Shown in pieces: positions 30,157 to 61,896 of a stretch of DNA of 64,000 nucleotides. Origin of the DNA: Phaeosaccion multiseriatum. Its lineage: Eukaryota > Protista > Ochrophyta, other classes. Where the stretch lies: positions 2,790,001-2,854,000 of the forward strand of contig OZ218957.1 of assembly GCA_965112735.1 (NCBI GenBank), given 5' to 3'. The notes below the pieces were generated by a model that was given only the letters and a program-made list of their open reading frames with translations, did not search any database and was not told where the DNA came from. The position numbers and the translations under genes are program-made. The stretch's first letter is position 1; every line of letters begins with the position of its first letter.

Positions 30157-33100
30157 CTAACTGCGGTAGGCTCCAAAGCCGTAGCTCTTCCCTTGACCAG
30201 AGGGTGCCGTTGATGATGATGACGACGATAGAACTGGTGACGATGCTACTGCTCCTGCGCTGCTGCTACTAGCTGCGAAGGGGGAATAGCTCGTCACGGG
30301 GGCTGGGGGGGTGGAGGAGGGTGGTGGTGATGATGGTACTGATGCCATTCCTCCTCCGGGGCTGCCACTGCGGTAGGCCCCGAAGCCGTAGCTCGGACTC
30401 GCTCCTCCTGAGCTGCTGGCTCTGCTGCTGATGCTGCTGGCTCCTGGCATAGGGGCAGAGCTCGTCACCGGAGCCGTCGCCGCTCGTGCCACCGGTGCAG
30501 GCGGTGCGACGGCCATTCCTCCTCCAGGGCTGCCGCTGCGGTACGCTCCGAAGCCATAGCTGGGAGACATGCCTCCTGAGCTGCTGCTGCTGCTGCCGCT
30601 GCTGCTGCTGGTGGCTCCCACAGGCGAGTAGCTCGCCATGGGAGCAGACGCTGCTGCCGGTGCTGCTGATCCGGACGACGAAAATGCCACTCCTCCAGGG
30701 CTGCCGCTACGGTAGGCCCCGAAGCCATAACTCCTGCCTCCTCCTCCGCTGGTGCCTCCGACCACAGGCGAGAAGCTTCTCGAGGGAGCTGACGATGATG
30801 GTCCGGAGCTGATGGGGTTGAATCCAAAGCCGGAAGAAGGAGAGCTGGACCCTGCGGATGAGGCTCCTGCTGCGCTGTCGCGGTAGGCTCCGAAGGGTGA
30901 GTAGCTCCTTGTGGCTCCTCCAGCGCCGATGCGGGTCGGTCCGGAAGGCGCAAAGTTCGATGGAGCAGACGATGACCGACCGGAAGGCGATGACGGTGGG
31001 ACGGCCATTCCCCCTCCAGGGCTGCCATCACGGTAGGCTCCAAAGCCGTAGCTGCGAGACATACCTCCTGAGCTGCTGCTGCTGCCGCTGGTGAGGCTGC
31101 TGGCTCCGGCAGAGGAGAAGCTCGACACAGAGGCAGTGGCTGATGGTGAAGATGAGGCGGAGGGCGGTACCGCCATTCCTCCTCCGGGGCTGCCCTCACG
31201 GTACGCCCCAAAGCCGTAGCTGGGAGACTTTCCTCCTGAGCTGCTGCTGCTGGCTCCGACAGGTGAGAAGCTCGTAGGGGGGGCAGCAGTAGAGGCTGCT
31301 GATCCCGAGCTGCTGGGGTTGAAGCCGAAGCCGGAAGAGGGAGAGCCCGTCGCGGATGCGGACGGTGGGACGGCCATTCCTCCTCCAGCGCTGCCGTCGC
31401 GGTAAGCCCCGAAGCCATAGCTCTTAGACATGCCTCCTGAACTGCTGATGCTGCTGCTGCTGGCTCCGACAGGCGAGAAGCTGGACACGGGAGCAGAAGC
31501 AGATGAAGATGCTGCTGGTGACGCGAAGGCGGACGGCGGTACTGCCATTCCTCCTCCAGGGCTGCCCTCACGGTACGCCCCAAAGCCGTAGCTCTTAGAC
31601 ATGCCCCCTGAGCTGCTGCTGGCTCCGACAGGGGAGAAGCTGGTTGGTGCAGAAGTAGCGGTTGCTGGTCCGGAGCTGCTGGGGTTGAATCCAAAGCCGG
31701 AAGAAGGAGAGCTGGTCACTGGGGCAGAGGGTACGACTGCCATTCCTCCTCCAGGGCTGCCGCTGCGGTATGCTCCAAAGCCATAGCTCTTAGACATGCC
31801 TCCTGAACTGCTGACGCTGCTGCTGCTGGCTCCGACAGGCGAGAAGCTGGACACGGGAGCAGAAGCAGATGAAGATGTTGCTGGTGGCGCGAAGGCGGAC
31901 GGCGGTACTGCCATTCCTCCTCCAATGCTGCCGTCACGATAGGCCCCGAAGCCGTAGCTCTTAGACATGCCTCCTGAGCTGCTACTGCTGGCTCCGACAG
32001 GGGAGAAGCTTGTAGGGGCAGAAGTACCGGTTGCTGGTCCGGAGCTGCTGGGGTTGAAGCCGAAGCCGGAAGAAGGAGAGCTGGTCACTGGGGCAGATGG
32101 TACGACTGCCATTCCTCCTCCAGGGCTGCCGCTGCGGTATGCTCCAAAGCCATAGCTCTTAGACATTCCACCGGAGCTGCTGCTGCCGCTGCTAAAGCTG
32201 CTTGCGCCAGGAGGCGAGTAGCTCGTCACGGGAGTGGGAGGAGCAGAAGGAGACGCTGCTGATGACGCAAAGGCGGACGGCGATGAGGCCATTCCTCCAG
32301 GGCTTCCTCCAGCAGGGTCGTCACGGTAGGCCCCGAAGCCATAGCTCAAGTAGTTCATGCCGCCTGCGCTACTACTGCTGCTGCTGCTGGCTCCGACAGA
32401 CGAGAAGCTCACGGGAGCGGACGCTGCTGGCGCGGCGGATCCGGACGGCGCGGATGTGGACGGTGGGACGGCCATTCCTCCTCCGGGGCTGCCGCTGCGG
32501 TAGGCACCGAAGCCATAGCTCTTAGACATGCCTCCTGAGCTGCTGCTGGTTCCGACAGGGGAGAAGCTGGTTGGAGCAGAAGTAGAAGCTGCCGGTCCCG
32601 AGCTGCTGGGGTTGAAGCCAAAGCCGGAAGAGGGGGAGCTAGGCGCTGACGCGGACGGTGCGACGGCCATACCTCCTCCAGGGCTGCCGCTGCGGTAGGC
32701 CCCGAAGCCATAGCTCTTAGACATTCCTCCTCCTCCTCCGCTGCTGGCTCCGGCAGGCGAGAAGCTCGTCACTGGGGCAAAAGCGGATGCTGCTGCTGGC
32801 GCGGCGGATCCGGACGGTGCGGATGCGGACGGTGGTGGGACGGCCATTCCTCCTCCGGGGCTGCCGCTGCGGTAGGCACCGAAGCCATAGCTCTTAGACA
32901 TGCCTCCTGAGCTGCTGCTGCTGGTTCCGAGAGGGGAGAAGCTTGTGGGGGCAGAAGTAGAGGTTGCTGGTCCGGAGCTGCTGGGGTTGAATCCGAAGCC
33001 GGAAGAAGGGGAGCTGGGCGCTGAGGCTGACGGCGACGCCATTCCTCCTCCAGGGCTGCCCTCACGGTAGGCCCCAAAGCCATAGCTGGGAGACATTCCT

Positions 33101-36100
33101 CCGGAGCTGCTGCTGCTGCTACTACTGCTGCCGCCAGGAGGCGAGTAGCTCGTGACGGGAGTAGAAGCAGACGCTGCTGCTGGTGAAGATGAGGCGGAAG
33201 GCGGTACTGCCATTCCTCCTCCCGGGCTGCCCGCACGGTAGGCCCCGAAGCCGTAGCTGGGCGACTTTCCACCTGAGCTGCTGCTGCTGCTGCCGCTGCT
33301 GAAGCTGCTGGCTCCGGCAGAGGAGAAGCTCGACACAGGAACAGTCACTGGTGATGGCACTGACGAGGATGGTGGAACGGCCATTCCTCCTCCAATGCTT
33401 CCGTCGCGGTAAGCTCCAAAGCCATAGCTCTTAGACATGCCTCCTGAGCTGCTGCTGGTTCCGACAGGCGAGAAGCTTGTTGGGGCAGAAGTAGAGGTTG
33501 CTGGTCCGGAGCTGCTGGGGTTGAAGCCGAAGCCGGAAGAAGGAGAGCTGGGCGCTGAGGCTGACGGCGACGCCATTCCTCCTCCAGGGCTGCCCTCACG
33601 GTAGGCCCCAAAGCCATAGCTGGGAGACATTCCTCCGGAGCTGCTGCTGCTGCTACTACTGCTGCCGCCAGGAGGCGAGTAGCTCGTGACGGGAGTAGAA
33701 GCAGACGCTGCTGCTGGTGAAGATGAGGCGGAAGGCGGTACTGCCATTCCTCCTCCCGGGCTGCCCGCACGGTAGGCCCCGAAGCCGTAGCTGGGCGACT
33801 TTCCACCTGAGCTGCTGCTGCTGCTGCCGCTGCTGAAGCTGCTGGCTCCGGCAGAGGAGAAGCTCGACACAGGAACAGTCACTGGTGATGGCACTGACGA
33901 GGATGGTGGAACGGCCATTCCTCCTCCAATGCTTCCGTCGCGGTAAGCTCCAAAGCCATAGCTCTTAGACATGCCTCCTGAGCTGCTGCTGGTTCCGACA
34001 GGCGAGAAGCTTGTTGGGGCAGAAGTAGAGGTTGCTGGTCCGGAGCTGCTGGGGTTGAAGCCGAAGCCGGAAGAAGGAGAGCTGGGCGCTGAGGCTGACG
34101 GCGACGCCATTCCTCCTCCAGGGCTGCCCTCACGGTAGGCCCCAAAGCCATAGCTGGGAGACATTCCTCCGGAGCTGCTGCTGCTGCTACTACTGCTGCC
34201 GCCAGGAGGCGAGTAGCTCGTGACGGGAGTAGAAGCAGACGCTGCTGCTGGTGAAGATGAGGCGGAAGGCGGTACTGCCATTCCTCCTCCCGGGCTGCCC
34301 GCACGGTAGGCCCCGAAGCCGTAGCTGGGCGACTTTCCACCTGAGCTGCTGCTGCTGCTGCCGCTGCTGAAGCTGCTGGCTCCGGCAGGCGAGAAGCTCG
34401 ACACAGGAACAGTCACTGGTGATGGCATTGACGAGGATGGTGGAACGGCCATTCCTCCTCCAATGCTTCCGTCGCGGTAAGCTCCAAAGCCATAGCTCTT
34501 AGACATGCCTCCTGAGCTGCTGCTGGTTCCGAGAGGGGAGAAGCTTGTGGGGGCAGAAGTGGAGGTTGCTGGTCCGGAGCTGCTGGGGTTGAATCCAAAG
34601 CCGGAAGAAGGGGAGCTGGGCGCTGAGGCTGACGGCGATGCCATTCCTCCTCCAGGGCTGCCCTCACGGTAGGCCCCAAAGCCATAGCTGGGAGACATTC
34701 CACCTGAGCTGCTGCTGCTGCTGCTGCTGCTGCTGCCGCCAGGAGGCGAGTAGCTCGTGACGGGAGTAGAAGCAGACGCTGCTGATGAAGATGAGGCGGA
34801 AGGCGGTGATGCCATTCCTCCTCCAGGGCTGCCCTCACGGTAGGCGCCAAAGCCGTAGCTGGGAGACACTCCACCTGAGCTGCTGCTGCTGCTGCTGGTG
34901 CCGCTGCTGAAGCTGCTGGCGCCAGGAGGCGAGTAGCTCGTCACAGGGACAGTTGCTACTGATGGCATTGAAGAGGTGGGCGCTGATGCCATTCCTCCTC
35001 CAATGCTGCCGTCACGATAGGCCCCGAAGCCGTAGCTCTTAGACATGCCTCCTGAGCTGCTACTGCTGGCTCCGACAGGGGAGAAGCTGGTTGGTGCAGA
35101 AGTAGCGGTTGCTGGTCCGGAGCTGCTGGGGTTGAATCCAAAGCCGGAAGAAGGAGAGCTGGTCACTGGGGCAGAGGGTACGACTGCCATTCCTCCTCCA
35201 GGGCTGCCGTCGCGGTAGGCTCCAAAGCCATAGCTCTTAGACATGCCTCCTGTGACGCTGACAGCAGGGGAGTAGCTCCTGACCACAACAGGCGCTGCTG
35301 GTGAAGATGAAGCGGCCGGTGGGGATGCCATTCCCCCTCCGGGGCTGCCATCGCGGTAGGCTCCAAAGCCATAGCTGGGAGATGCTCCTCCTGAGCTGCT
35401 GCTGCCGCTGCTGCTGATGCTACCGCCGCTGGCTGCGACAGACGAGAAGCTCGACACGGGAGCAGGCGCGGAGGGTGACGCAAAGGCAGAGGGCGATGAG
35501 GCCACTCCTCCGGGGCTGCCGTCGCGGTAGGCTCCGAAGCCGTAGCTCTTAGACATGCCTCCTGAGGTGCTGCCTCCGACAGGTGAGAAGCTCGCCACGG
35601 GAGCAGACGTAGAGGCTGCTGGTCCGGAGCTGCTGGGGTTGAAGCCGAAGCCGGAAGAGGGGGAGCTAGGTGCTGATGCCATTCCTCCAGAGCTTCCTCC
35701 AGCAGGCTCGTTGCGGTAGGCTCCAAAGCCGAAGTCTGTAAAGCGGGAAGGGCTCTTGTTCATGATCGAGTAGCTCGTCACAGGGACGCCAGTCAGTGGT
35801 GACACTGGCGCTTTTGCTGCGGGTGCGGATGCCATTCCTCCTCCAGGGCTGCCCTCTCGGTAGGCTCCAAAGCCGTAGTTCGTAGACATGCCTCCTGAGG
35901 AGCTGCTGCTGCTGCCGCCGCTGATGAAGCTGCTCGTGCTGCTGCTGGCTCCGGGAGACGAGAAGCTCGATACAGGGGCAGTGGCTGATGAGGAAGATGA
36001 GGAGGAGGGCGGCACTGCCATTCCTCCTCCGGGGCTGCCCTTGCGGTAGGCCCCGAAGCCATAATCGATCGACATTCCTTCTGCTGCTGCCGCTGCGCTG

Positions 36101-39100
36101 CTACTACTGCTGCTGCTACCGCTGCCGTATCCCGAAGGAGAGTAGGCAGAAGGTACTGCCATTCCGCCTCCGGGGCTGCCGCTGCGGTAGGCCCCGAAAC
36201 CGTAGTCAACCGACGCACCTCCTGGGCTGCTGCTGCTGGCTCCGCCAGGCGAGAAGCTCGTTGGGGCAGAAGTAGAGGCTGCTGGTCCGGAGCTGCTGGG
36301 GTTGAAGCCGAAGCCGGAAGAAGGGGAGCTAGGTGCTGATGCCATTCCTCCTCCAGAGTTTCCTCCAGCAGGCTCGTTGCGGTAGGCGCCAAAGCCGAAG
36401 TCTGTAAAGCGGGAAGGGCTCTTGTTCATGATCGAGTAGCTCGTCACAGGTGTGCCTGTCAGTGGCGAAATTGGCGCTGATGCGGGCGGTGCGACGGCCA
36501 TTCCTCCTCCAATGCTGCCGTCGCGGTAGGCTCCAAAGCCGTAGTTCGTAGACATGCCTCCTGAGGAGCTGCTGCTGCTGCTGCCGCCGCCGCTGGTGAA
36601 GCTGCTCGTGCTGCTGCTGGCTCCGGGAGACGAGAAGCTCGATACAGGGGCAGTGGCCGATGAGGAAGATGAGGAGGAGGGCGGTACTGCCATTCCTCCT
36701 CCGGGGCTGCCCTTGCGGTAGGCCCCAAAGCCATAATCGATCGACATTCCTTCTGCTGCTGCCGCGCTGCTACCGCTGCTGCTGCCGTATCCCGAAGGGG
36801 AGTAGGCGGACGCCGACGCCGACGCCATTCCTCCTCCGGGGCTGCCGCTGCGGTAAGCTCCGAAGCCGTAATCGGCCGACATTCCTCCTGAGCTGCTGCT
36901 GCTACTGCTGCTGCTGGCTCCGGCGGACGAGAAGCTCGACACTGGAGCGGGTGCTGAGGGTGACGCAAAGGCAGAGGGCGACGAGGCCATTCCTCCTCCA
37001 GAGCTTCCTCCAGCAGGCTCGTTGCGGTAGGCGCCAAAGCCGTAGTCTGCGAAGCGGGAAGGGCTCTTGTTCATGATGGAGTAGCTCGTCACAGGTGTGC
37101 CTGTCAGTGGTGACACTGGCGCTTTTGCTGCTGGTGCGGATGCCATTCCTCCTCCAGGGCTGCCCTCTCGGTAGGCTCCAAAGCCGTAGCTCGGAGACAT
37201 GCCTCCTGAGCTGCTGCCACTCGCCCCAACAGGGGAGGAGAAGCTTGTCTTGGGAGCAGAAGTAGACGCTGCTGCTGCTGCTGGTGGTGGTGGTGGTGGC
37301 GTGGCGGGGTTGAATCCGAAGCCGTTAGACGAGCTGGTCACTGGAGCTGAGACTTGTGCCATTCCTCCTCCAGGGCTGCCGCTGCGGTATGCTCCAAAGC
37401 CGTAGTCTGCTGTGGCTGCGGATCCAGAGGGGGATGTCGCCATTCCTCCAGGGCTGTTGCCGCCGCTGCTGGCACGGTGATCTCCTCCAAAGGGGGAGTA
37501 GCTCTTCTTCATTCCTCCTCCGCTGCTGCTGCTGGCTCCCGCAGGCGCGAAGCTCGGCACGGGAGCAGAAGTAGTAGCTGCTGGGCTCGAGCTGCTGGGG
37601 TTGAATCCGAAACCATTAGAAGAAGAGCTCGTCGCTGGTGCTGAGGGTGGTGCTGATGCCATTCCTCCTCCAGGGCTGCCGCTGCGGTATGCTCCAAAGC
37701 CGTAGCTCGGAGACGCTCCACCTGAGCTGCTGCTGCTGCTCGCGCTGCTGCTGCTGCCTCCACTGGTGAAGCTGCTCGTGCTGCTGCTGCTGGCTCCGGG
37801 AGACGAGACGCTCGACACAGGGGCAGTGGCCGATGAGGAAGATGAGGAGGACGGCGGTACTGCCATTCCTCCTCCGGGGCTGCCCTTGCGGTAGGCCCCG
37901 AAGCCGTAGTCTGCGAAGCGGGAAGGGCTGTCCTTGTTGTTGTTCATAATCGAGTAGCTCGTCACAGGGGCGCCGGTCACGGGTGACACTGCCGCTGTTG
38001 CGGGCGGTGCGACGGCCATTCCTCCTCCGATGCTGCCGTCACGGTAGGCTCCAAAGCCGTAGCTCGGAGACGCTCCTCCTGAGCTGCTGCTGCTGCTGCT
38101 GCTGCTGCTGGCTCCGGGAGACGAGAAGCTCGATACAGGGGCAGTGGACGATGAGGAAGATGAGGAGGAGGGCGGTACTGCCATTCCTCCTCCGGGGCTG
38201 CCCTTGCGGTAGGCCCCAAAGCCATAATCGATCGACATTCCTTCTGCTGCTGCGCTGCTGCTGCCGCCGCCGTATCCGGAAGGCGTGTAGCTCGCGGACG
38301 ACACGGCCGGCGAGGCCATTCCTCCTCCAGGGCTGCCCTCACGGTACGCCCCAAACCCATAGCTGGGAGACGCTCCTCCTCCGCTGCTGCCGGTGCTACT
38401 GCTGCTGCCACTGCTGGCTCCGGCAGGCGAGAAGCTCACCTTGGGAGCAAACGCCGCCGGTGAGGAAGAGGAGGCGGAGGGCGGTACTGCCATTCCTCCT
38501 CCAGGGCTGCCCTCACGGTAGGCCCCAAAGCCATAGCTCGGCGACATTCCTCCTGAGCTGCTGCTGCTGCTACTGCTGCTGGCTCCGGCGGACGAGAAGC
38601 TCGACACGGGAGCGGGTGCTGAGGATGAAGAGAAAGCGGACGGCGCTGATGCCATTCCTCCTCCAGAGCTTCCTCCAGCAGGCTCGTTGCGGTAGGCGCC
38701 AAAGCCGTAGTCTGCGAAGCGGGAAGGGCTCTTGTTCATGATGGAGTAGCTCGTCACAGGTGTGCCTGTCAGTGGCGACACTGCTGACTCGCTGCGGTAG
38801 GCCCCGAAGCCATAGCTCCTCGTTCCTGAGCTGCTGGTACTGGTGCTGCTGAAGCCGCTAGGGGAAAAGCTGGTCCTTGGGGCGGGCGGAGCTGCTGCTG
38901 CCACTGGTGCTGGTGCGAACGCCGCTCCTCCAGAGGGGGGGCTGCCGTTGCGGTAGGCTCCGAAGCCGTAGTCTCCAAAGCGGGAAGGGCTGTCCTTGTT
39001 GTTGTTCATAATCGAGTAGCTCGTCACAGGGGCGCCGGTCACTGGCGACACTGCTGCCGTTGCGGGTGGCATCAGTGACATGCCTCCAATGCTGCCGCTG

Positions 39101-42100
39101 CGGTAGGCCCCGAAGCCGTAGCTCACAGGCGCTGAGCTGCTGCTGCTGCTGGTGCTGACAGTAGTTGTTGCTGGGGGGGTGGAAGGGTTGAATCCAAAGC
39201 CGGAAGAAGCGGAAGTCGGTGGTGGGGGTGATGCCATTCCTCCTCCGGGGCTGCCGCTGCGGTGGTCACCCCACGGAGCGTAGCTCTTACCCGCCCCTCC
39301 TGCGCTGCCAGCTGCTGCTGCTGCGCCACTTGCGCTTGCTCCTGCTCCTGCTCCGCCAACGGGAGTGTAGCTGACAGCGGGGGGAGGCGGTGCTGACACA
39401 GGTGCTGATTTGATCGAAACGGTGCTGGTGCTGGTGGTACCCGTGCTGCTGGTGGTGCTGGTGGAGTGGTCACCGCCGAAACGGGCATAGCTCCTCGCCA
39501 TGTCTCCCGCACTGCTCTGGTAGGCGCCGATGGGAGGAGAAGGGGGGCTCACCGGAGCCGGGGGCGCTGGAGACACGGGGGCGGAGGGTTCCACTTCCAC
39601 TCGGCCAGGGCTGCTGCTCCGATGATCTCCTCCGAAGCGCGAGTAGCTCTTGCCGGTAGGAGCGCCGTTGCTCGAGGGTGCAGCTGCTGCTGGCTGCTGG
39701 TGATGAAGCGGTGGTGCCACACCTCCGGAGCTGGCGCGGCTGTCCTTGTAAGGAGAGTAGCTGGTCACGGGCGCCGTGGCTGGAGGCGCTTGCTGCTGCT
39801 GGGGTGGCGGTGCCTGCGGTCGTGGCGGGGCTTGAGGTCGTGGTGCGCGTACCGCAGGCGTGATGCCTGAAACGGTGCCGAAGTCTCCAAAGGCGGGTTG
39901 GCTGCGAGTACGGCTCGAAGACGACTGATTTCCGCTGCCGGCGTTGTTGGCGCCACGGTCATCACCAAAGAAGGCGTTGCGCGTCAAGACCTTGTTGTGG
40001 GAGGTGCGGTAGGCGCCGAAGGAGGAGTAGCTCCTGACGATGACGGGCGGCTCGCCCGAGGGAGGGCCGGAGCGGTAGTCACCGAATCGTGAGTAGCTCT
40101 TGCTTGCAGGAGGGGCGGGCGCGGGGGCGACAGGTGCCGTGGTGGGTGTGCTGCCTCCTGCTCCGCTGTCGCGATTGAATCCGAAGGGCGGGGGTGAGCT
40201 GCTCGCTGGTGCCGCCGGTGGTGGCGGTGGCGGTGAGGACGACGATACCGGGCGGCTGTAGTCACCGAAGCGACTGTAGCTCTTCTTGGCAGGAGGAGAT
40301 GCGGGTGGTGGGGCTTGCGCCTGGGGGGGGGGCGGGGGAGGGGGCGCTGCTCTTCCTGCTGGTGGTGGTGGTGGGGGCGCTCTCGCTCCTCCTCCTCCTC
40401 CGGGGCTGCTGCGGTAGTCGCCGAAGCGGCTGTAGCTCTTGGGAGGTGGGCTAGGTGCTTGGGCTGGGGGCATCGGTGGTGCTCCTGCTGCTGACGCGCC
40501 CTGAGGAGCGGCGTTACCACCGCCGAAGAAGGCGCCGGAGCCGACGGGAGGACGTTGAACAGGTGCTGCCCTGACGGGTGCCGCAGGTCGAGCTTGAGGT
40601 GGGGGCGGAGGCCTTGCGGCAGGGGGGGCTTGGGGTCGTGCAGATGAGCCGGTGGGGCCGCGGTAGGCTCCGAAGGGAGAATAGCTCTTGCGCCCCTGCT
40701 GCTGCTGCTGCTGCTGCTGTTGCTGTTGCTGCTGCTGTTGCTGTGCTGCCCGCTGCTGTTGCTGCATTGCTGCTGCTGCTGCTGCCTGTGCCTGGCCTCC
40801 CTGCTGGGGTGGCCTTGCTACCTGTCCTCCCTGCTGGGGCGGCTGCTGCTGCATGCGTGCTTGTGGCGGTTGGGGGGCGCCGGGGGGGGCTCTGGGGGGG
40901 GCGTTGGCGGCCGCAGCCTGCCTGAGCTGCTGCTGCTGCCGCTCCAGCTGCTGCTGCTGCTGAAGCACCAACTGCTGCTGCTCCTGGTAACTGCTCTCGG
41001 TGTCGAACTGAGGAGTGGGGAAAGAGTGGAGGTGGGGTGGGGAGGGGAGGGGAGGGAGGGCAGGAGAGGAGAGGACGGAGAGGGTGAGTGAAATTGGTAT
41101 TCGACGTTTCGTTCGCGCGTGGAGCACGGTGTACATGCACAAACACGCACGCGCACTACACAAGCCGCTCGACATTTACGTCATAAATCGAGGCAAGCAG
41201 GAAGTCATGGCAGAAGGAGGAGGGCATGCGCACCCACACACACACAGAGACAGAGGCTGACAAGTGCAGGAGGAGTAGAGTATGCATGCACACACACACA
41301 CAGAGACAGAGAGAGACGGAGGTTGACAAGTGCAGGAGGAGTAGAGTATGCATGCACACACACACACACACATGTAACACAAGAGAAATAGCCCCCCTTG
41401 CATTGCGTGCACTCCTCCTTCTGCACTCCTCCTTGCCTCAACATGACGTCCAAGAGCAGAAGGAAGAGGACACGCACGCACACACACACACACGCAACAC
41501 GAGAGACAAAAGGAATAGATCCCCCCGCTTGTGTGGCATGTGTGTGTGTGTAAATGTGCATGCCCTCCTCCTCCTGCCCCACCCACGCATCATGTCGGAG
41601 AGCGCAGAAGGGAGGTGCAGCCAGCCCAACCCAACCCAACCGCCATCACATCTCAACCCCCTCCCTCCTCAGTGTACTAACCTTTGATGCTTGCTGTGCG
41701 GCGAAGAGGGCCACAGCCCCGGCTCCTACACCGAGCTCCACCTTGTTGTCCTCAACGAACGCGCCCACGTCGCCACCTCCGGCGTCCTTCCACACCTTCT
41801 GGATGGTGGTGGAGAACATGGTATTGATCTCGTCACTGCCATCGCCAACCTGCTGCATTGCCTTACTGCCTGCTTGCTGCACCGCCTCGCTGCCTGCTTG
41901 CATGGCGTCGCTGCCTGCTTCCTGCATGTACTCGGTGCCTGCTTCCTGCATAGCCTCGCTGCCTGCCTGCATGGCGTCGGTGCCGGCTTGCTGCATGGCC
42001 TGTGTCGTCTGCTGCACGGCCTCTGTGGCTGCTGAAGTCGCTGACCCGGCACTCTGCATCGCATCTACCGCTACGTCCGCCGACTGCGTCTGCACCACAT

Positions 42101-43322
42101 CCACTACTGCCTCCACCGTCTCTGTAACGGCGGGGACGGCGTTGCTTGCTGCTGCTGTTACTGCTGTCACCGCATTTACCGCTGCCTCGGCCACCTCTGG
42201 GATGGCGTCGGGAGGAGGCGCTGAGGAGGCCGCTGTTGACGCTGCTGCTGCTGCCGCCGCTGCCGCCGCTGCTGCTCCTGCTGCTACTGCTGGAACACTG
42301 GAGGGCTTCTTGGGCTCCAACACCACACCGTACGGAGTTGTACCCCCCACTGCTTTCTCGAACATTACCTCCTTCAGCTTGGGTTCTCGCGGACCCGGTG
42401 CAGGTGCCTCGACCACCTTGGCCGGGACAGGGGCAGGCTCAGGCTTTGGCACAGGCGCAGGCGCCTCCACCTTCTTGACCTGCTGCACCTCCGGCTCTGC
42501 TGCCGTTGTAGGAGCGGCCGCCTTTGCTGGAGGCACAGTCAGAGGCAAGCCGGAAGAGTGATGATCCACCACGGCCCAGCCCGAGTCCATGAGCGGATCT
42601 TGCCGGTAGGTGAAGCTGTACCGCGCGTCCCCCACCGTGCGATCTGTTTCGCCAGGGGACACCCACGAGTAGGAGTAGTAGCCCGTGTTGATGGCCACCG
42701 TGTTGGTAATCATGCGCGCATTTGGCCGGTTGTTGGACAGCTGCAGCTCGGGCAGCTTGGCAAAGAAGGTCAAGTAGTCCAAAATCTCCTTGGGCGTGGT
42801 GCGCATCTCCTCCGGGCCCCACAGCACCGCATCCTTCCCATACAACTTGGCCGCCTGCTGAGCAGCGTCCTTCTCCCCCGACCCCAGCGTCCTCAACCAT
42901 TCGTCCGTGGCAGACAGCACGCCATCCAGCTTGGTGGGGGCCGGCGCTGCGGCTGTCCCTTCCTCCCCCCCCTCCTCTGCACGTGCCGCGGCTGCTTGCA
43001 GTCCCGCCATGCCCGCAAATGCGGCCGCCGCTGCCCCCCGCACGCTAAGTTCAAACGCCTCCAGCACCGACTCCCTAGTCACGCTACCCCCCCCCCTGGC
43101 GGCCATCTCCGCCGCGCTCTCTGACTCCCATACCTCCCTCCCCGTCCCCTTGAGCACTCCCGGTGTTCCCTGCTGCGAGCGCGTACTGCCAGACACCAAC
43201 CGCCCTCGAAAAGGAGCTCCAGACACTAAACGAGAGGTGGGCAACTGAAAGGCTTGCACACTACTTGTGCCGGCGAAGCCCGCCACCGCGGCAAAGCCGC
43301 AGCAGTAGCTAGGCACCCTCAT
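30157..43322 (-). CDS. Giant (~4160 aa) plastid-targeted iota-carbonic-anhydrase-domain / YGFGAYR-repeat protein; exons 41682..43322 and 30157..41007
   Basis: Donor AAG|gttagt at 41682/41681 and acceptor ccccactcctcag|TTC at 41008/41007 are both phase 0. Signal peptide plus VQA|FQL. COG4875-like domain (LYGKDAVLW..R.TP.EI.DY..FF..INTGYYSY..ARYSFTY..WAVVDHHSSGLP). The 10.85-kb second exon is uninterrupted and has ~50 [YF]GFGAYR motifs. Confidence 0.8.
32870..35000 (-). repeat. Near-perfect 534-bp (178-aa) coding tandem repeat, ~3.5-4 units, inside the giant exon
   Basis: Sequence at 33301 recurs at 33835. Alternative-frame ORFs at 33345, 33879 and 34413 are offset by exactly 534, and the first two translate identically. 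Confidence 0.9.
42545..42930 (-). other. Iota-class carbonic anhydrase-like (SnoaL/CaMKII association-domain fold) domain within the giant gene
   Basis: Diagnostic ARYSFTY and HHSSxxP motifs of COG4875/LCIP63-type proteins. Confidence 0.82.
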
Positions 43323-43977: not shown

Positions 43978-46063
43978 CCCAGACAAACACTGACAAGAAA
44001 CACACAAACACACACACGACAAATAAACACACAGGTACAGACACCACGCATTTGCACAGCCCGCGCGCACACACACACACACACGCGGGGCGCGGCACTT
44101 GTCTCACTTACCCTTGCACACACGCGCGCGGCACTTGCCTCACTTACCCTTAAAGAGCTCCGCCCGATTGAGAGCAGCACCGTGGACTTGACAGCACACA
44201 TGGTCCAAGGCGTTGCGCCGTCTCCATTACCGCCCGTCCCATCGACGGCAGAGTGCACGTGTGTGGCAGAGAGGAGAACATCCTGCAAAGAGGAGAGGGC
44301 AGTTTGCCCACCATAGTCCACCGCGCCTCGTCTGCAGACTCTCTCCCACTCTTTGCTTGCTCATGGTGCTCATGGTCGCTGCAACCAAGTCGATACCGTG
44401 ATAGCTCACTATCTCCGCCAGAGGCAGGGCCTTGCCGCAAGCCTCACGCGTCTCGATACTCCGGCACTTGCACCACCTCTTTGACGCCAAGTCCGGTTAG
44501 TCGAGCGTAGCATAGCCTCGGGGGGGGGCGAGCTGGAGCCTTCTCGCCACCCTCCTTTCGGTCCCGCCCCCTCCCCCTTTACGCCCTGTGAAGCGATGGC
44601 GCTGCCCGCTGACATTCAGATAGGGCTGCTGAGATGTTTATTGAAACCTCGGGGAAGGGAGTGAATGGGGCGTTCTTCCTCCTCCATTTTTCCCTATTCT
44701 TCCTTAAATGAGGGACGGTCGGAGGACTGAGAAAAGGAAGGACAGTAGAGGGAAAAGGAGAAGCAGCAGTACAGGACCACCTCAGAAAGGTAGAGTACTT
44801 CGGGGGGGGGGGGGAGTGTATACTAACCTCCTGCACCAGTCTTCTTGTGACTTGTTATTTTCAAATTTCAAATACACATCACCAGCTGGTGATCTTGAGA
44901 CGTTGGTGATTCGCTCACACAGCGTTACTTTTGGACAACCATAGATGGCATTAGGAGTGCGATCCATCTTCGCGCGGGAGATTTGGCGTAGGACACTCGC
45001 AGGCACTCACTGCGTCCCTTTGCTTCGCTCGGAGGAGATTGGCGTGTCTTTGGAATAAACCCAGGGGCGGTCATCAGTGGATATTGCTGTTAGGCAGCAC
45101 AGATGGCACCAAACCAAAGGGTGAAGGGTGAAGGAGCAGGATGGCACCAAATGAATCCACACACCCCTCTTCTCTTCGTGCGAAGTATGCTGGACCAAAG
45201 GAGCTCTGTCCTGTCCCCGCTCCTTTCTGCCCTCCCCTTCTGACGCGGCACAAAAAGCCTTGGCACTCTTCCATCACCATGACTTCACTTCACTTCAGTG
45301 CACTTCGTGCCATCCATGCCAAGCTGCCGGAGCACTCTCATCTGTTCCCAAAATACCACAGCCCTGCTGCTCTGGCTGCTGCTGCTGCTGCTGCTCGAGA
45401 GCGGCCACACAGTAAAGTGAAACGCTCACTGAGCGACAGCCCCTCCCTCCCTCCCTCCCTTACTCACTCACTCACCCTCTCCTCTTTCTTCAAAATTGTG
45501 CGCAGCCCCCACCGCCCGCCCCGCCGCGCCTCCCTCCTGTACAATATTGCAAGACAGGGCGTTATCCTCACTCCTGTCTGTGTGTCTGCCTGTCCACCTG
45601 TGTGTGTGTGGCGTGGTGTTGTCTGGCTGGCCACCTCCTCGTCAACAGAGGGAAGGTCGCGCCAAATGCGCAAAGCGGGTGGGGAAGACAGGCGGGTACG
45701 GTATACCACCAGTGGCAGCAATCCGCGGTGGCACTGGTCCATCTCCCTCCCTCCCTCCCTCTTTCTCTCTCTCCCTCTCTGAAATGGAAGGAAGGCTACG
45801 GAGGCCTACAGACCACATTCTTGGCTCCGCACCGTGCCTCTTCTAACCACAACTCTCTCTCTCTCTTGTCCCTTTCGTTCCCACTCCCCTCTTCATATGC
45901 CTCTCGTCTCCCTTTCCCCTCACAACCACACCCCCAACCCAAGTCCCCCATATGCCTACGCCGCCCCGCTTTGGCAGTCTCTTCTTCGCTCTGCCATACC
46001 TCTCTCCCTCCCTCTCTTCCTCTCCTCTGCCCCATCCACTGCCATCCCCTCTCTGTCTGTCTC

Positions 46064-48299
46064 TCAGCCCTGCATCTGTGCATACTCCTTGAGAATGCTG
46101 CTGGCAATGACCAGATGCTGCACCTCGGATGTGCCCTCGTATATCTGACAGTAGAGACATATAGGGAGAGAAGAGGCGTATGGGTGGGGAGGGTAGGGGA
46201 GGGAGAGTACAGGCGTATGGGTGGGGAGGGCAGAGGAGAGAGAGTAGAGGCGTATGGGTGGGGAGGGTAGAGGAGAGTGAGTAGAGGCGTATGGGTGGGG
46301 AGGGTAGAGGAGAGAGTAGAGGCGTATGGGTGGGGAGGGTAGAGGAGAGAGTGAGTACAGGCGTATGGGTGGGGAGGGTAGAGGAGAGAGAGTAGAGGCG
46401 TATGGGTGGGGAGGGCAGAGGAGAGAGAGAGTAGAGGCGTATGGGTGGGGAGGGTAGAGAAGAGAGAGAGTAGAGGCGTATGGGTGGGGAGGGCAGAGGA
46501 GAGAGTAGAGGCGTATGGGTGGGGAGGGCAGAGGAGAGAGAGAGTAGAGGCGTATGGGTGGGGAGGGTAGAGGAGAGAGAGTAGAGGCGTATGGGTGTGG
46601 AGGGCAGAGGAGAGAGAGTAGAGGCGTATGGGTGGGGAGGGTAGAGGAGAGAGAGTAGAGGCGTATGGGTGGGGAGGGTAGAGGAGAGTGAGTAGAGGCG
46701 TATGGGTGGGGAGGGTAGAGGAGAGAGAGTAGAGGCGTATGGGTGGGGAGGGTAGAGGAGAGAGAGTAGAGGCGTATGGGTGTGGAGGGCAGAGGAGAGA
46801 GAGTAGAGGCGTATGGGTGGGGAGGGTAGAGGAGAGAGAGTAGAGGCGTATGGGTGGGGAGGGTAGAGGAGAGTGAGTAGAGGCGTATGGGTGGGGAGGG
46901 TAGAGGAGAGAGAGTAGAGGCGTATGGGTGGGGAGGGTAGAGGAGAGAGAGAGTACAGGCGTATGGGTGGGGAGGGTAGGGGAGGGAGAGTAGAGGCGTA
47001 TGGGTGGGGAGGGTAGAGGAGAGAGAGGAGAGGCGTATGGGTAGGGAGGGCAGAGGAGAGAGAGTAGAAGCGTATGGGTGGGGAGGGCAGAGGAGAGAGA
47101 GAGTAGAGGCGTATGGGTGGGGAGGGTAGAGGAGAGAGAGAGTAGAGGCGTATGGGTGGGGAGGGTAGAGGAGAGAGAGAGTAGAGGCGTATGGGTGGGG
47201 AGGGAAGAGGAGAGAGTAGAGGCGTATGGGTGGGGAGGGCAGAGGAGAGAGAGTAGAGGCGTATGGGTGGGGAGAGCAGAGGAGAGAGAGAGTAGAGGCG
47301 TATGGGTGGGGAGGGTAGAGGAGAGAGAGAGAGTAGAGGCGTATGGGTGGGGAGGGCAGAGGAGAGAGAGTAGAGGCGTATGGGTGGGGAGGGCAGAGGA
47401 GAGAGAGTAGAGGCGTATGGGTGGGGAGGGTAGAGAAGAGAGAGTAGAGGCGTAAGGGTGGGGAGGGCAGAGGAGAGAGAGTAGAGGCGTATGGGTGGGG
47501 AGGGTAGAGAAGAGAGAGAGTAGAGGCGTAAGGGTGGGGAGGGCAGAGGAGAGAGAGTAGAGGCGTATGGGTGGGGAGGGTAGAGAAGAGAGAGAGAGTA
47601 GAGGCGTATGGGTGGGGAGGGTAGAGGAGAGAGCGTAGAGGCGTACGGTGAGGATCAGGAGAAGCGGCACGGCACGGCTCGCATGAGAGGTGCAAAACGC
47701 AGTAAGAGTCGGGGAGAGACGAGGGAGGCCTGATTGGGTGTACCTCAGTAAACCCCACAAACTACACACGCAGCAGGCAAGGCCCCAACGGTTACCATCA
47801 CTTCGGAGGTTCCAACAGAGAGCGCATCAGGTGACGGAGAGGCGCAGATGCGAACCGCTTCCCTCTCATTCTCCTCTCCCCTCCACTCCCTTCCTTTGTC
47901 ATCTCTCCTCCCCTCCCCTCTCTCCTGTCCTCTCCTCTCTGCAGTAACGTACCTCTGTAATTCGAGCGTCGCGGTAGTGCCTCTCCGCCGGCATCTCAGT
48001 CACGTAACCCTGTGGGATGGGGTGAAAGGGTGTGCGATGGTGTGTAAACAAGTGTGCACAAGGTACAGCAGTGGTAGTGGGGTGGAAACGGTGTGTCGCG
48101 GTGATACACTAAGAGGGTGTAGGCGTTGAGATATTGTACAGGGCCCCTCCCTCCCTCCCTCCCTCCCTCCCTGATCCTCTCCCAAAGCCAACGCACCATT
48201 CCCCCCAGGACTTGTATGGCTTGGTGCGAGCAGAACGTAGCGGCCTGCAAAGAAGAACGAAGCGATTCACAGAGACCAAGACGCAGCAGTAGTAGGAGT

Positions 48300-60493: not shown

Positions 60494-61247
60494 CTAATCC
60501 ATGATGAGATCAAGCATATCTTCGATAACTTCACCCTGAAGAGGCCAAGACAAAAGACACAAGGGCAGGAGGAAGGGCAGGAGTAAGTACATGGAAGGCG
60601 GGCATGGCAAGTCAAGACAAGGCAAAGGCAAGCAAAACGGCAAAACGGACCGAGGCAAGAATAGGCAAGGCAAGGCAAAAGCAAGAATAAAGCAAGACAG
60701 ACAAGAGAGATTAAGGGGAGACAAAAGGCAAAAGGCAAAAGCAAGGTCAAATGGTAAAAGGCCAGTCAAAGTATGGCAGCAAAAGCAAGATAGTCGGTTC
60801 CCGCCCGAGACATATGACGGACCTTGTTGTTCATGTAGTCGAATCGGAGGGGCAGGAAGTAGTCGAGTGCCTCGGGGGCGGTGTTGATTTGGATGCCTCC
60901 GAGCAAGGCAATCTTGTTCTTGACTCCCCCTGCTCCCGCCTTGACAATGTCCTGCATCAGCACATCCTGTGAGTCGTAAATGGCATAGGGGAGCTCCACG
61001 CTGGGGTTCTCAGCGTCCGCCAGCCGCTTTCCGTGGGGGAGGATGAGCTCCTGCACCACTCCCTGCTGGAAGTCGGTGAACTGCTGAATCTTGGTGGAAA
61101 TGGGAAGCCCGCCCTCCACAATGCCCTTGACGTAGTTGGAGGCCGCCACCGCGCTTCCACAGCAAGTGTCCACCAGCTCAATTCCTCGGCGCTCCACCTT
61201 GCCCACCTGCCCGGTGGTGGCAACACCGACGTGGGGCCCGTACACAA

Positions 61248-61287
<40 letters not shown>

Positions 61288-61896
61288 CATGTGTGTGCGT
61301 GTGTGAGGGGAGAGGGGGGAGGGGGGGCGCACTGGATGAGATGGTGTTCATGTTCTTGCTCCCTCCTTCCCTTCTCGGTACCCTACCCTACTGCTGCTTA
61401 CCAGGCAGGACCCATCGTCGGGAATATGCGCCGCCATAGCACCGAAGCCCGTGTTGCCTGCAAAGGGGAAGCCAGACAGGCCTCCAAGGTTAAAGTTGTT
61501 GCCGTAGATCTTGACAAAGTCGTCCTCCAGCTGCCTGGCAAGCTCATCGCAGCACAGGGAGGTGGCCAGGAGCGTGTTGTTCTCGGTGTATCCCCTGTCG
61601 GCGAGGGCCTTGCACACACGGGTCTCGAGCTGCTGGTTGGAGAGCGCCTTGGGGAAGATGGAGGTCACCTTTCCGTCGTATTCCGTGGGCTTGGGGGCCG
61701 ATTTGAAGAGGTTGGCCACCACCTCCATCACTCCGCCCTTGCTAGAAGCTTCCGCACTCAATTTGGAGGAAACAGCCGCGCTGTGCACTGGGCGCGCCGA
61801 AGGAAGCACAAAGGCGGACCCCACCGACATGGTGGAGAGCAGGAGCAGCGGCAGCAGCATGCTAGCGCGCTCGGAGCGGACAGAGGTAGGGGCCAT
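60494..61896 (-). CDS. Plastid-targeted LCIB-family / theta-type carbonic anhydrase, ~320 aa; exons 61402..61896, 60823..61248, 60494..60535
   Basis: Signal peptide plus GSA|FVL; LLATSLCCDEL, FNLGGLSGFPFAGNTGFGAMAAHIPD, YGPHVG, CCGSAVAA, LLGGIQINT; the Cys/His/Cys metal ligands of the LCIB family are present. Confidence 0.92.

Follow-up and report, generated by a model that had tools for sequence, protein, structure and literature searches.

The window analyzed here is a 64,000-nucleotide stretch of the Phaeosaccion multiseriatum genome (GenBank assembly GCA_965112735.1, contig OZ218957.1, positions 2,790,001 to 2,854,000 of the forward strand). On its minus strand lies the gene that is the subject of this study, whose first exon encodes a plastid-type leader followed by an iota-carbonic anhydrase (iota-CA)-type domain. 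The open reading frame (ORF) of exon 1 begins with an ATG at 43322 and runs for 547 codons to 41682, where it meets the donor AAG/GTTAGT (GT at 41681). Past the donor, the frame continues for 11 codons to a stop, and an R-R pair is found among these codons, just after a hydrophobic stretch. Exon 2, a 3616-codon repeat ORF, lies in another frame in the raw sequence and comes into phase if its start is set at 41007 by the earliest AG in frame past its last upstream stop, which sits behind a long pyrimidine tract. We infer from these signals a splice from 41682 to 41007. Similar intron ends (GTAAGC...CAG) were observed in the homology-defined introns of two theta-CA genes of the same genome, L008 and L009, which are also full of CA-repeat microsatellites. 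Exon 1 and exon 2 were analyzed separately.

A first-pass annotation had read this gene as a possible tether, with a CA in the thylakoid lumen, a membrane anchor just ahead of the intron and a repeat tail in the stroma. All of the stretches that it quoted were found on the minus strand of 41682-43322, including the VQA/F25 site, the Arg/Ser-type transit stretch, the Ala-rich run with its A-x-A, and the pre-intron stretch VELGVGAGAVALFAA. The features that carry the argument below are as follows.

43251..43322, minus strand: signal peptide, residues 1-24, with the cleavage-type motif VQA/F25 (read from the translation)
43137..43250, minus strand: stromal transit-peptide-like stretch, residues 25-62, rich in Ser, Thr, Arg and Gly and with no Asp or Glu (translation)
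43083..43136, minus strand: acidic spacer, residues 63-80 (translation)
42978..43082, minus strand: thylakoid-transfer-like element, residues 81-115, consisting of V-T-R-E-S (81-85), an acidic turn, R94, an Ala-rich run and A-R-A/E116 (position and layout compared with relatives)
42537..42953, minus strand: iota-CA-type (COG4875, CaMKII-AD / NTF2-like) domain, residues 124-262 (3h51 match, AlphaFold2, Foldseek)
42813..42821, minus strand: site of a two-residue deletion, W168-G169-P170, with the catalytic Thr and its neighbor lost (hmmalign)
41008..41681, minus strand: intron, GT...AG, 674 nt, rich in CA-repeat microsatellites (predicted from its sequence)
30157..41007, minus strand: exon 2, a 3616-codon repeat tail rich in Ser, Gly, Ala and Pro (translation)

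The leader and its transfer-like element

The leader begins with a signal peptide, a Phe at +1 and a hydroxylated, basic, acid-poor transit-like stretch, after which E63 is the first acidic residue. This layout is that of the bipartite presequence of complex red plastids, and the protein is predicted to be sent to the plastid. The same small-x-small/F pattern was observed in nine other plastid-type leaders of the genome (those of PsbO, a PsbP-like protein, HCF136, theta-CAs and iota-CA paralogs), and residues 1-35 share 49% identity with the L002 paralog's leader (BLASTP E = 6e-5). An acidic patch between the transit peptide and a basic motif is also present in L002, PsbO, the PsbP-like protein and HCF136.

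Proteins of the thylakoid lumen from the same genome served as controls. These were PsbO, PsbU, a PsbP-family protein and HCF136, of which PsbU was read from an internal exon only; PsbQ had no match in the genome. The leaders of PsbO, the PsbP-family protein and HCF136 had a common order: a signal peptide with +1 Phe, an acid-free transit peptide, an acidic patch, a basic motif, an uncharged Ala/Val/Gly-rich run of 20-28 residues, and a small-x-small site. As basic motif, PsbO has K-K and HCF136 has S-R-R-G-F-M, and the PsbP-family protein has just T-R-Q. In the PsbU exon, K-K was followed by the run and then by the small-x-small site. In the PsbP-family protein (L014, G000:C10:1048262-1048675), the lumen-type leader carries one Arg, in T-R-Q-H-F-F, and no twin arginine, so that the twin-arginine motif may be relaxed in this lineage.

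The layout of the lumen controls is shared by the window protein and by L002 (G000:C4:24501-24923). In L002, V-T-R-K is followed by a further Lys, a 20-residue run and A-E-A, and the catalytic Thr of its domain is kept. Two theta-CA leaders could be read, those of L008 and L009, one of which lies in this window, and both consist of a signal and a transit peptide without a transfer domain; the tandem theta-CA copies (L011) were left out of this comparison, as their leaders could not be used with so unclear an exon structure. Among the retrieved relatives, a second hydrophobic run was observed 20-40 residues ahead of the domain in every complete secondary-plastid member of the close clade. The basic residues before this run are S-R-R in P0159, a metagenomic protein with a full tripartite leader, T-R-R in P0152, and R-R in P0009 and P0034. 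They are R-K in P0007 (Chrysoparadoxa), P0015 (Ascophyllum) and L002, and a single Arg in P0012 (Phaeothamnion). Read from these sequences, the resemblance to a transfer peptide is real and is a family trait, and the family most likely descends from an ancestor exported by way of Tat (twin-arginine translocation).

The window protein departs from its relatives within this common layout. Its V-T-R-E-S motif contains R83 and E84, giving T-R-E in place of the S/T-R-R or R-K of the relatives. Three Glu and an amphipathic acidic turn follow the motif, and a second Arg, R94, is reached 11 residues downstream, ahead of the uncharged Ala-rich run (96-113) that ends in A113-R114-A115/E116. The consecutive arginines of a Tat-type transfer peptide (RR, rarely RK or KR) are missing, as is its net-positive n-region. 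In the 12 residues ahead of the run, the net charge is -2, compared with +4 in L002, 0 to +2 in the four lumen controls and -1 in the stromal theta-CAs. The run itself is weaker as well, with a best 15-residue Kyte-Doolittle (KD) hydropathy of 1.36, compared with 1.82 in L002, 1.63-1.96 in the four lumen controls and 0.73-0.76 in the stromal theta-CAs. Ala makes up 13 of the run's 18 residues (72%), so the A-x-A site is nearly automatic and only weakly informative. AlphaFold2 predicted residues 83-114 as one continuous 32-residue helix, with a predicted local distance difference test (pLDDT) score of about 70-75.

Local alignment of this part of the leader to L002 was marginal (z = 2.3, shuffle p = 0.03), and alignment to relatives other than L002 gave no significant similarity. 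With similarity this weak even for the paralog, homology of the element is argued from position and layout and not from sequence similarity. The element is like a Tat signal peptide in its weakly hydrophobic Gly/Ala-rich core, its A-x-A and a basic residue in the cleavage region, and it differs in that the arginine pair is absent and the n-region is negative. In the cleavage region, an Arg at -2 is typical of Tat and Sec-avoiding. Overall, the element looks like a decaying Tat-type signal. What stands of the lumen transfer peptide proposed by the first-pass annotation is its position and layout, which match L002, the ochrophyte orthologs and the four lumen proteins; in state, the element is degenerate, with R-E at the arginine pair, an n-region of -2 and the weakest run of the set. 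Tat is known to tolerate even conservative changes of the arginine pair poorly, and one positive charge with a sufficiently hydrophobic core can still allow some transport (PMC7317946).

The carbonic anhydrase-type head

The domain at residues 124-262 was matched by PDB 3h51, a Xanthomonas COG4875 structure, with E = 2e-9 as a single sequence (phmmer) and 4e-17 with a four-paralog profile; the match to Pfam DUF4440 was weak. In the AlphaFold2 model, made with a 60-row alignment, residues 131-258 had pLDDT 96-98, and 3h51 was also the top Foldseek match (TM-score by target 0.78-0.80), in line with an NTF2-like alpha+beta cone. With the four-paralog profile, HMMER retrieved 1257 relatives at E <= 0.001, and the closest named ones are from ochrophytes (Chrysoparadoxa, Phaeothamnion, Ascophyllum, Vaucheria and Ectocarpus). 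By word index, the 547- and 270-residue queries found no protein, probably because Ala-rich words swamped the candidates, and an L002 query did find matches. The genome (67 Mb, 22 contigs) contains further copies of the domain, L002, L003 and L004, with 57-59% domain identity, and the open frames read for them are short stand-alone proteins.

Alignment of 294 domains from 256 proteins with hmmalign revealed the deletion in the window protein, which turns G-T-V-S-E-E into G-P-E-E and is in frame in the assembly. The column of the catalytic Thr has Thr in 278/294 domains and Ser in 6/294, and the window protein is its sole gap. In the adjacent column, Ser in 277/294, the window protein has the sole Pro. 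Tyr183 and the HHSS at 254-257 (H254, H255, S256 and S257) were kept, in columns conserved in 286-289 of the 294 domains, and the Phe after the catalytic Tyr was replaced by Leu. The spacing of Thr and Tyr in the alignment is 15, matching Thr62 and Tyr77 of tp-iota-CA. The pocket of this Thalassiosira pseudonana COG4875 enzyme is formed by Thr62, Tyr77, His139 and Ser141, and proteins of the iota-CA domain family make dimers and tetramers (PMC8395977). In all2909 (Thr106) and Bn86287, changing the Thr to Ala kills activity, and the other pocket residues are Tyr, His and Ser (PMC8132391). The head of the window protein is probably inactive, or altered, as a CA. With the catalytic Thr lost, the CO2-supplying lumenal enzyme of the first-pass annotation is unlikely for this gene.

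CAs of another class are also encoded in this genome. Matches to theta-CA (LCIB family) numbered 31 exons, or roughly 15 genes, with tandem arrays of about seven copies on one contig (G000:C1:6098453-6112595) and four on another (C9:3573381-3583536). One theta-CA gene (C4:21963-22674) lies less than 2 kb from an iota-CA gene, and the one in the window (60832-61647) is 18 kb from the iota-CA-type gene described here.

The proposed membrane anchor and the repeat tail

The remainder of exon 1, between the domain and the intron, contains four features on the minus strand.

42297..42536, minus strand: linker rich in Pro, Ala, Lys and Glu, residues 263-342 (pLDDT mostly < 60, no predicted secondary structure)
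42216..42296, minus strand: poly-Ala tract, residues 343-369 (top 19-residue segment of the exon with a KD19 of 1.76; additive insertion sum lowest in the exon)
41784..42212, minus strand: long predicted helices with short AMQ-type repeats, residues 371-513 (AlphaFold2 helices 371-412 and 415-513, pLDDT 55-74)
41685..41741, minus strand: proposed anchor, residues 528-546 (core L530-A542, 13 residues, three Gly)

The first-pass annotation had placed a single-pass anchor at the last of these, where VELGVGAGAVALFAA occupies residues 528-542. A single-pass protein would be expected to have a hydrophobic span of about 18-23 residues, and the core found here has 13. Its KD19 is 1.12 versus the classical cut-off of 1.6. 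Among the hydrophobic 19-residue segments of the exon it ranks fifth, after the poly-Ala tract, a helix rich in Ala and Val, the signal peptide and the part that holds the transfer-like run. As the hydrophobic peak of the exon is poly-Ala, runs of Ala alone evidently yield such peaks in this protein. A simple additive insertion sum, calculated with scale values after Hessa et al. 2005, is +8.8 for the proposed anchor, compared with +0.2 and -3.9 for the transmembrane (TM)-like segments of two relatives, P0005 and P0040. In the AlphaFold2 model, pLDDT was < 50 for residues 521-536, and a short helix at 533-546 scored 44-48.

The surroundings of the segment are equally unlike those of an anchor. 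Its upstream flank is acidic, and downstream, where a basic stromal flank would be expected, Q-Q-A-S-K (K547) is followed by one Asp and two Glu in the first ten residues of exon 2, giving a net acidic flank. No paralog or ortholog examined extends as far as this segment, and the 63-residue C-terminal module matched only itself in the 67-Mb genome. A membrane span at 528-546 is not supported by these sequence measures or by the model. The cautions that had accompanied the first-pass proposal, the missing twin Arg and the short hydrophobic segment, were apt.

Convincing TM-like segments were observed in some relatives of the iota-CA domain. P0005 (Ectocarpus, 810 aa) has one at its C-terminus, after ankyrin-like and two CA-type domains, and P0040 (251 aa) has one at its N-terminus, so that membrane-anchored iota-CA-type proteins may exist elsewhere.

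A UbiE-type methyltransferase was considered for residues 490-546 (window 41685-41850) and rejected, as the two NCBIfam matches (E = 0.02-0.04) reached 13-14 bits against cut-offs of 158-216. In these sub-threshold matches, which concern the N-terminal part of the enzymes, V-E-L-G-V-G-A-G falls at the position of the Gly-rich S-adenosylmethionine (SAM) loop. Because the matches are sub-threshold, the G-x-G-x-G look of the proposed anchor was treated as chance, which the resemblance probably is.

Ahead of the proposed anchor, the poly-Ala tract, an Ala/Val-rich part and the AMQ-type repeats together make about 170 residues of near-continuous predicted helix (343-513, window 41784-42296). No look-alike of this region was found in the genome or in a feature search of the ESM Atlas, and an ESM Atlas feature search with residues 371-547 gave no match.

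The repeat tail has a highest KD19 of 1.08 and no TM-like segment. It is disordered and contains 153 K+R versus 68 D+E, a net charge of about +85. A tail with no hydrophobic segment and a net charge of this size suits the stroma better than the positively charged lumen.

A separate run of long open frames, built of a tandem unit rich in Pro, Leu, Ser and Thr, was noted on the minus strand at 45796-47769. The 2-kb composition bin at 46001-48000 has a GC skew of 0.60. This region has the look of tandemly repeated DNA and not of a gene.

A proposed retired enzyme head and the readings set against it

The explanation that we favor, and to which we give about an even chance, is that this protein is a soluble scaffold of the stroma whose lumen signal is decaying and whose NTF2-like head is probably inactive. 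Exon 1 would encode a plastid presequence (signal and transit peptide) followed by the degenerate remnant of a Tat-type thylakoid-targeting domain. This remnant would go back to a single-domain iota-CA ancestor of the lumen type, and L002 would be the better-preserved copy of that ancestor. After duplication, the copy in the window would have been joined to the giant, basic, disordered repeat tail. It would then have lost the second basic residue of the twin arginine (now R-E), the positive n-region and the catalytic Thr, while the hydrophobic core of the transfer-like element drifted to poly-Ala. The product would most likely be a soluble stromal scaffold, possibly of the pyrenoid matrix, in which the NTF2-like head would serve oligomerization or binding and not catalysis. 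Decay of both signal and active site in the sole paralog with a giant tail fits a copy that was freed from a role as lumenal enzyme and reused as a scaffold head.

Several observations weigh against this explanation. The uncharged run and the A-x-A site have persisted, and R94, directly ahead of the run, supplies the minimal "one positive charge plus hydrophobic core" (PMC7317946). The PsbP-family leader of the same genome is also single-Arg, with T-R-Q, and the Ascophyllum ortholog P0015 is similarly acidic after its R-K; on the strength of these two leaders, a relaxed motif may still work in this lineage. In the head, the remaining pocket (Tyr, His, His, Ser and Ser) is intact and the fold is predicted with very high confidence, which suggests continued selection on the domain and makes a residual or altered activity conceivable.

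An unlikely alternative, though the best placed of those considered, is that the helix at 83-114 persists in the mature protein, where it would lie peripherally and bind membrane or self-associate, with head and tail both in the stroma. The continuous 32-residue helix was predicted with moderate confidence and lies outside the NTF2-like fold, which begins near residue 131, and positions 84, 88 and 91 put acids on one face, with V/L/F on the other. However, alignment depth in this region is small, Ala-rich helices are readily predicted, and no conserved amphipathic pattern at 83-114 was seen in the relatives.

It is improbable that the protein is the tether of the first-pass annotation, in which the weak transfer peptide works, the head enters the lumen, residues 528-546 stop transfer and the tail stays in the stroma. 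From the transit peptide through the acidic spacer, the basic residue and the A/G-rich run to the A-x-A, the layout is that of the four lumen proteins of this genome, which also has a lumen-type leader with a single Arg (PsbP-like), and the basic tail suits the stromal side. Bacterial Tat is described as integrating C-tail-anchored proteins (PMC10924467), but the candidate anchor of the window protein is far less hydrophobic than TM-like segments and would precede about 3600 residues rather than a short tail. The tether is further weakened by the 13-residue core with three Gly, whose insertion sum compares with +0.2 or lower in the TM-like segments, by the low model confidence there, and by the poly-Ala tract at 343-369 being more hydrophobic than the anchor. 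The usual basic cluster is absent from the net acidic downstream flank, and the n-region is net negative, with R-E at the RR position and the catalytic Thr missing. We consider it equally improbable that the degenerate signal still brings the head, folded and without catalytic activity, to the lumen of thylakoids that cross the pyrenoid, with the chain spanning the membrane and the tail stromal. If true, a tether with a lumenal head would be a physical link between the Rubisco matrix and the thylakoid, made from a retired lumenal enzyme.

Retention of the intron, sometimes or always, would give a stand-alone protein of 558 residues that ends 11 residues past K547, with the repeat ORF separate or unjoined. 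The open frame beyond the donor, with its R-R pair just after the hydrophobic stretch, is consistent with this, and the splice itself is predicted from sequence. We hold it to be improbable too, as no credible start or targeting signal belongs to the repeat ORF itself, the donor matches the acceptor in phase, the acceptor is the earliest AG in frame past the last stop and has a strong pyrimidine tract before it, and the intron resembles others of the genome.

That the entire protein, tail included, is threaded into the lumen by Sec, with R94 and the Ala-rich run as a Sec-type signal, is very unlikely: we know of no precedent for Sec import of such a whole protein, the Arg at -2 of the cleavage region is Sec-avoiding, the run is less hydrophobic than the Sec-type signals of PsbO and PsbU in this genome, and import would bring about 3600 residues at net +85 into a compartment that is itself positively charged. 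In its favor are the Sec-compatible, disordered tail, the positive charge immediately before the run, and reported unidentified densities in the lumen of diatom pyrenoid-penetrating thylakoids (bioRxiv 10.1101/2023.10.26.564148).

Several known systems can be compared with the window protein. With LCIP63 (tp-iota-CA) of Thalassiosira pseudonana it shares the domain family, the HHSS, the catalytic Tyr, a bipartite presequence and an oligomerizing domain (PMC6776030, PMC8395977). LCIP63 differs in having four active domains with Thr and no thylakoid-targeting domain, and it is found at the stromal periphery (PMC6776030); the window protein, in contrast, combines a single Thr-less domain with a transfer-like element and about 3600 residues of tail. 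Closer in sequence are L002 and the single-domain iota-CAs of ochrophytes (P0007, P0012, P0015 and P0159), with domains 46-58% identical and a matching arrangement, in which a signal peptide and a transit peptide precede [ST]-R-x, the hydrophobic run and the domain. Unlike the window protein, they are 228-267 residues long, have the Thr intact and mostly RR or RK, and have no linker, helices or repeat tail; their location is predicted to be lumenal. Like the Rubisco linkers EPYC1 and PYCO1, the window protein is a plastid-targeted repeat protein that is long, basic and disordered, but those linkers have no enzyme-derived head or transfer-like element.

The localized iota-CA of a chlorarachniophyte is periplastidal. 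To our knowledge, this one and the diatom protein of the stromal periphery are the only two iota-CAs that have been localized, and no description of a lumen-targeted iota-CA was found in the literature searched, the coverage of which was incomplete. The concept of a CA behind a thylakoid-targeting domain that frees CO2 in the pyrenoid is familiar from the diatom theta-CA and from the alpha-type CAH3 of Chlamydomonas. These belong to other CA classes, and they are soluble enzymes of the lumen whose active sites are intact. A theta-CA is the CA in the lumen of diatoms (bioRxiv 10.1101/2023.10.26.564148).

For the fusion protein, a membrane-bolted, CO2-releasing enzyme is unlikely and a scaffold with a retired enzyme head is more likely, which shifts the focus from CA activity to oligomerization and binding partners. 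The idea of a lumenal CA that supplies CO2 stays as a prediction for L002 and its orthologs, and not for this gene. The sequences predict that single-domain iota-CAs of ochrophytes (L002 and those of Chrysoparadoxa, Phaeothamnion, Ascophyllum and Vaucheria) carry thylakoid-targeting domains, some of them with full twin arginines. This family-wide targeting domain is a more useful lead than the relic signal of the gene described here. If other ochrophytes do have an iota-CA in the lumen, it would be a testable candidate for the enzyme that serves the bestrophin-fed lumen route there.

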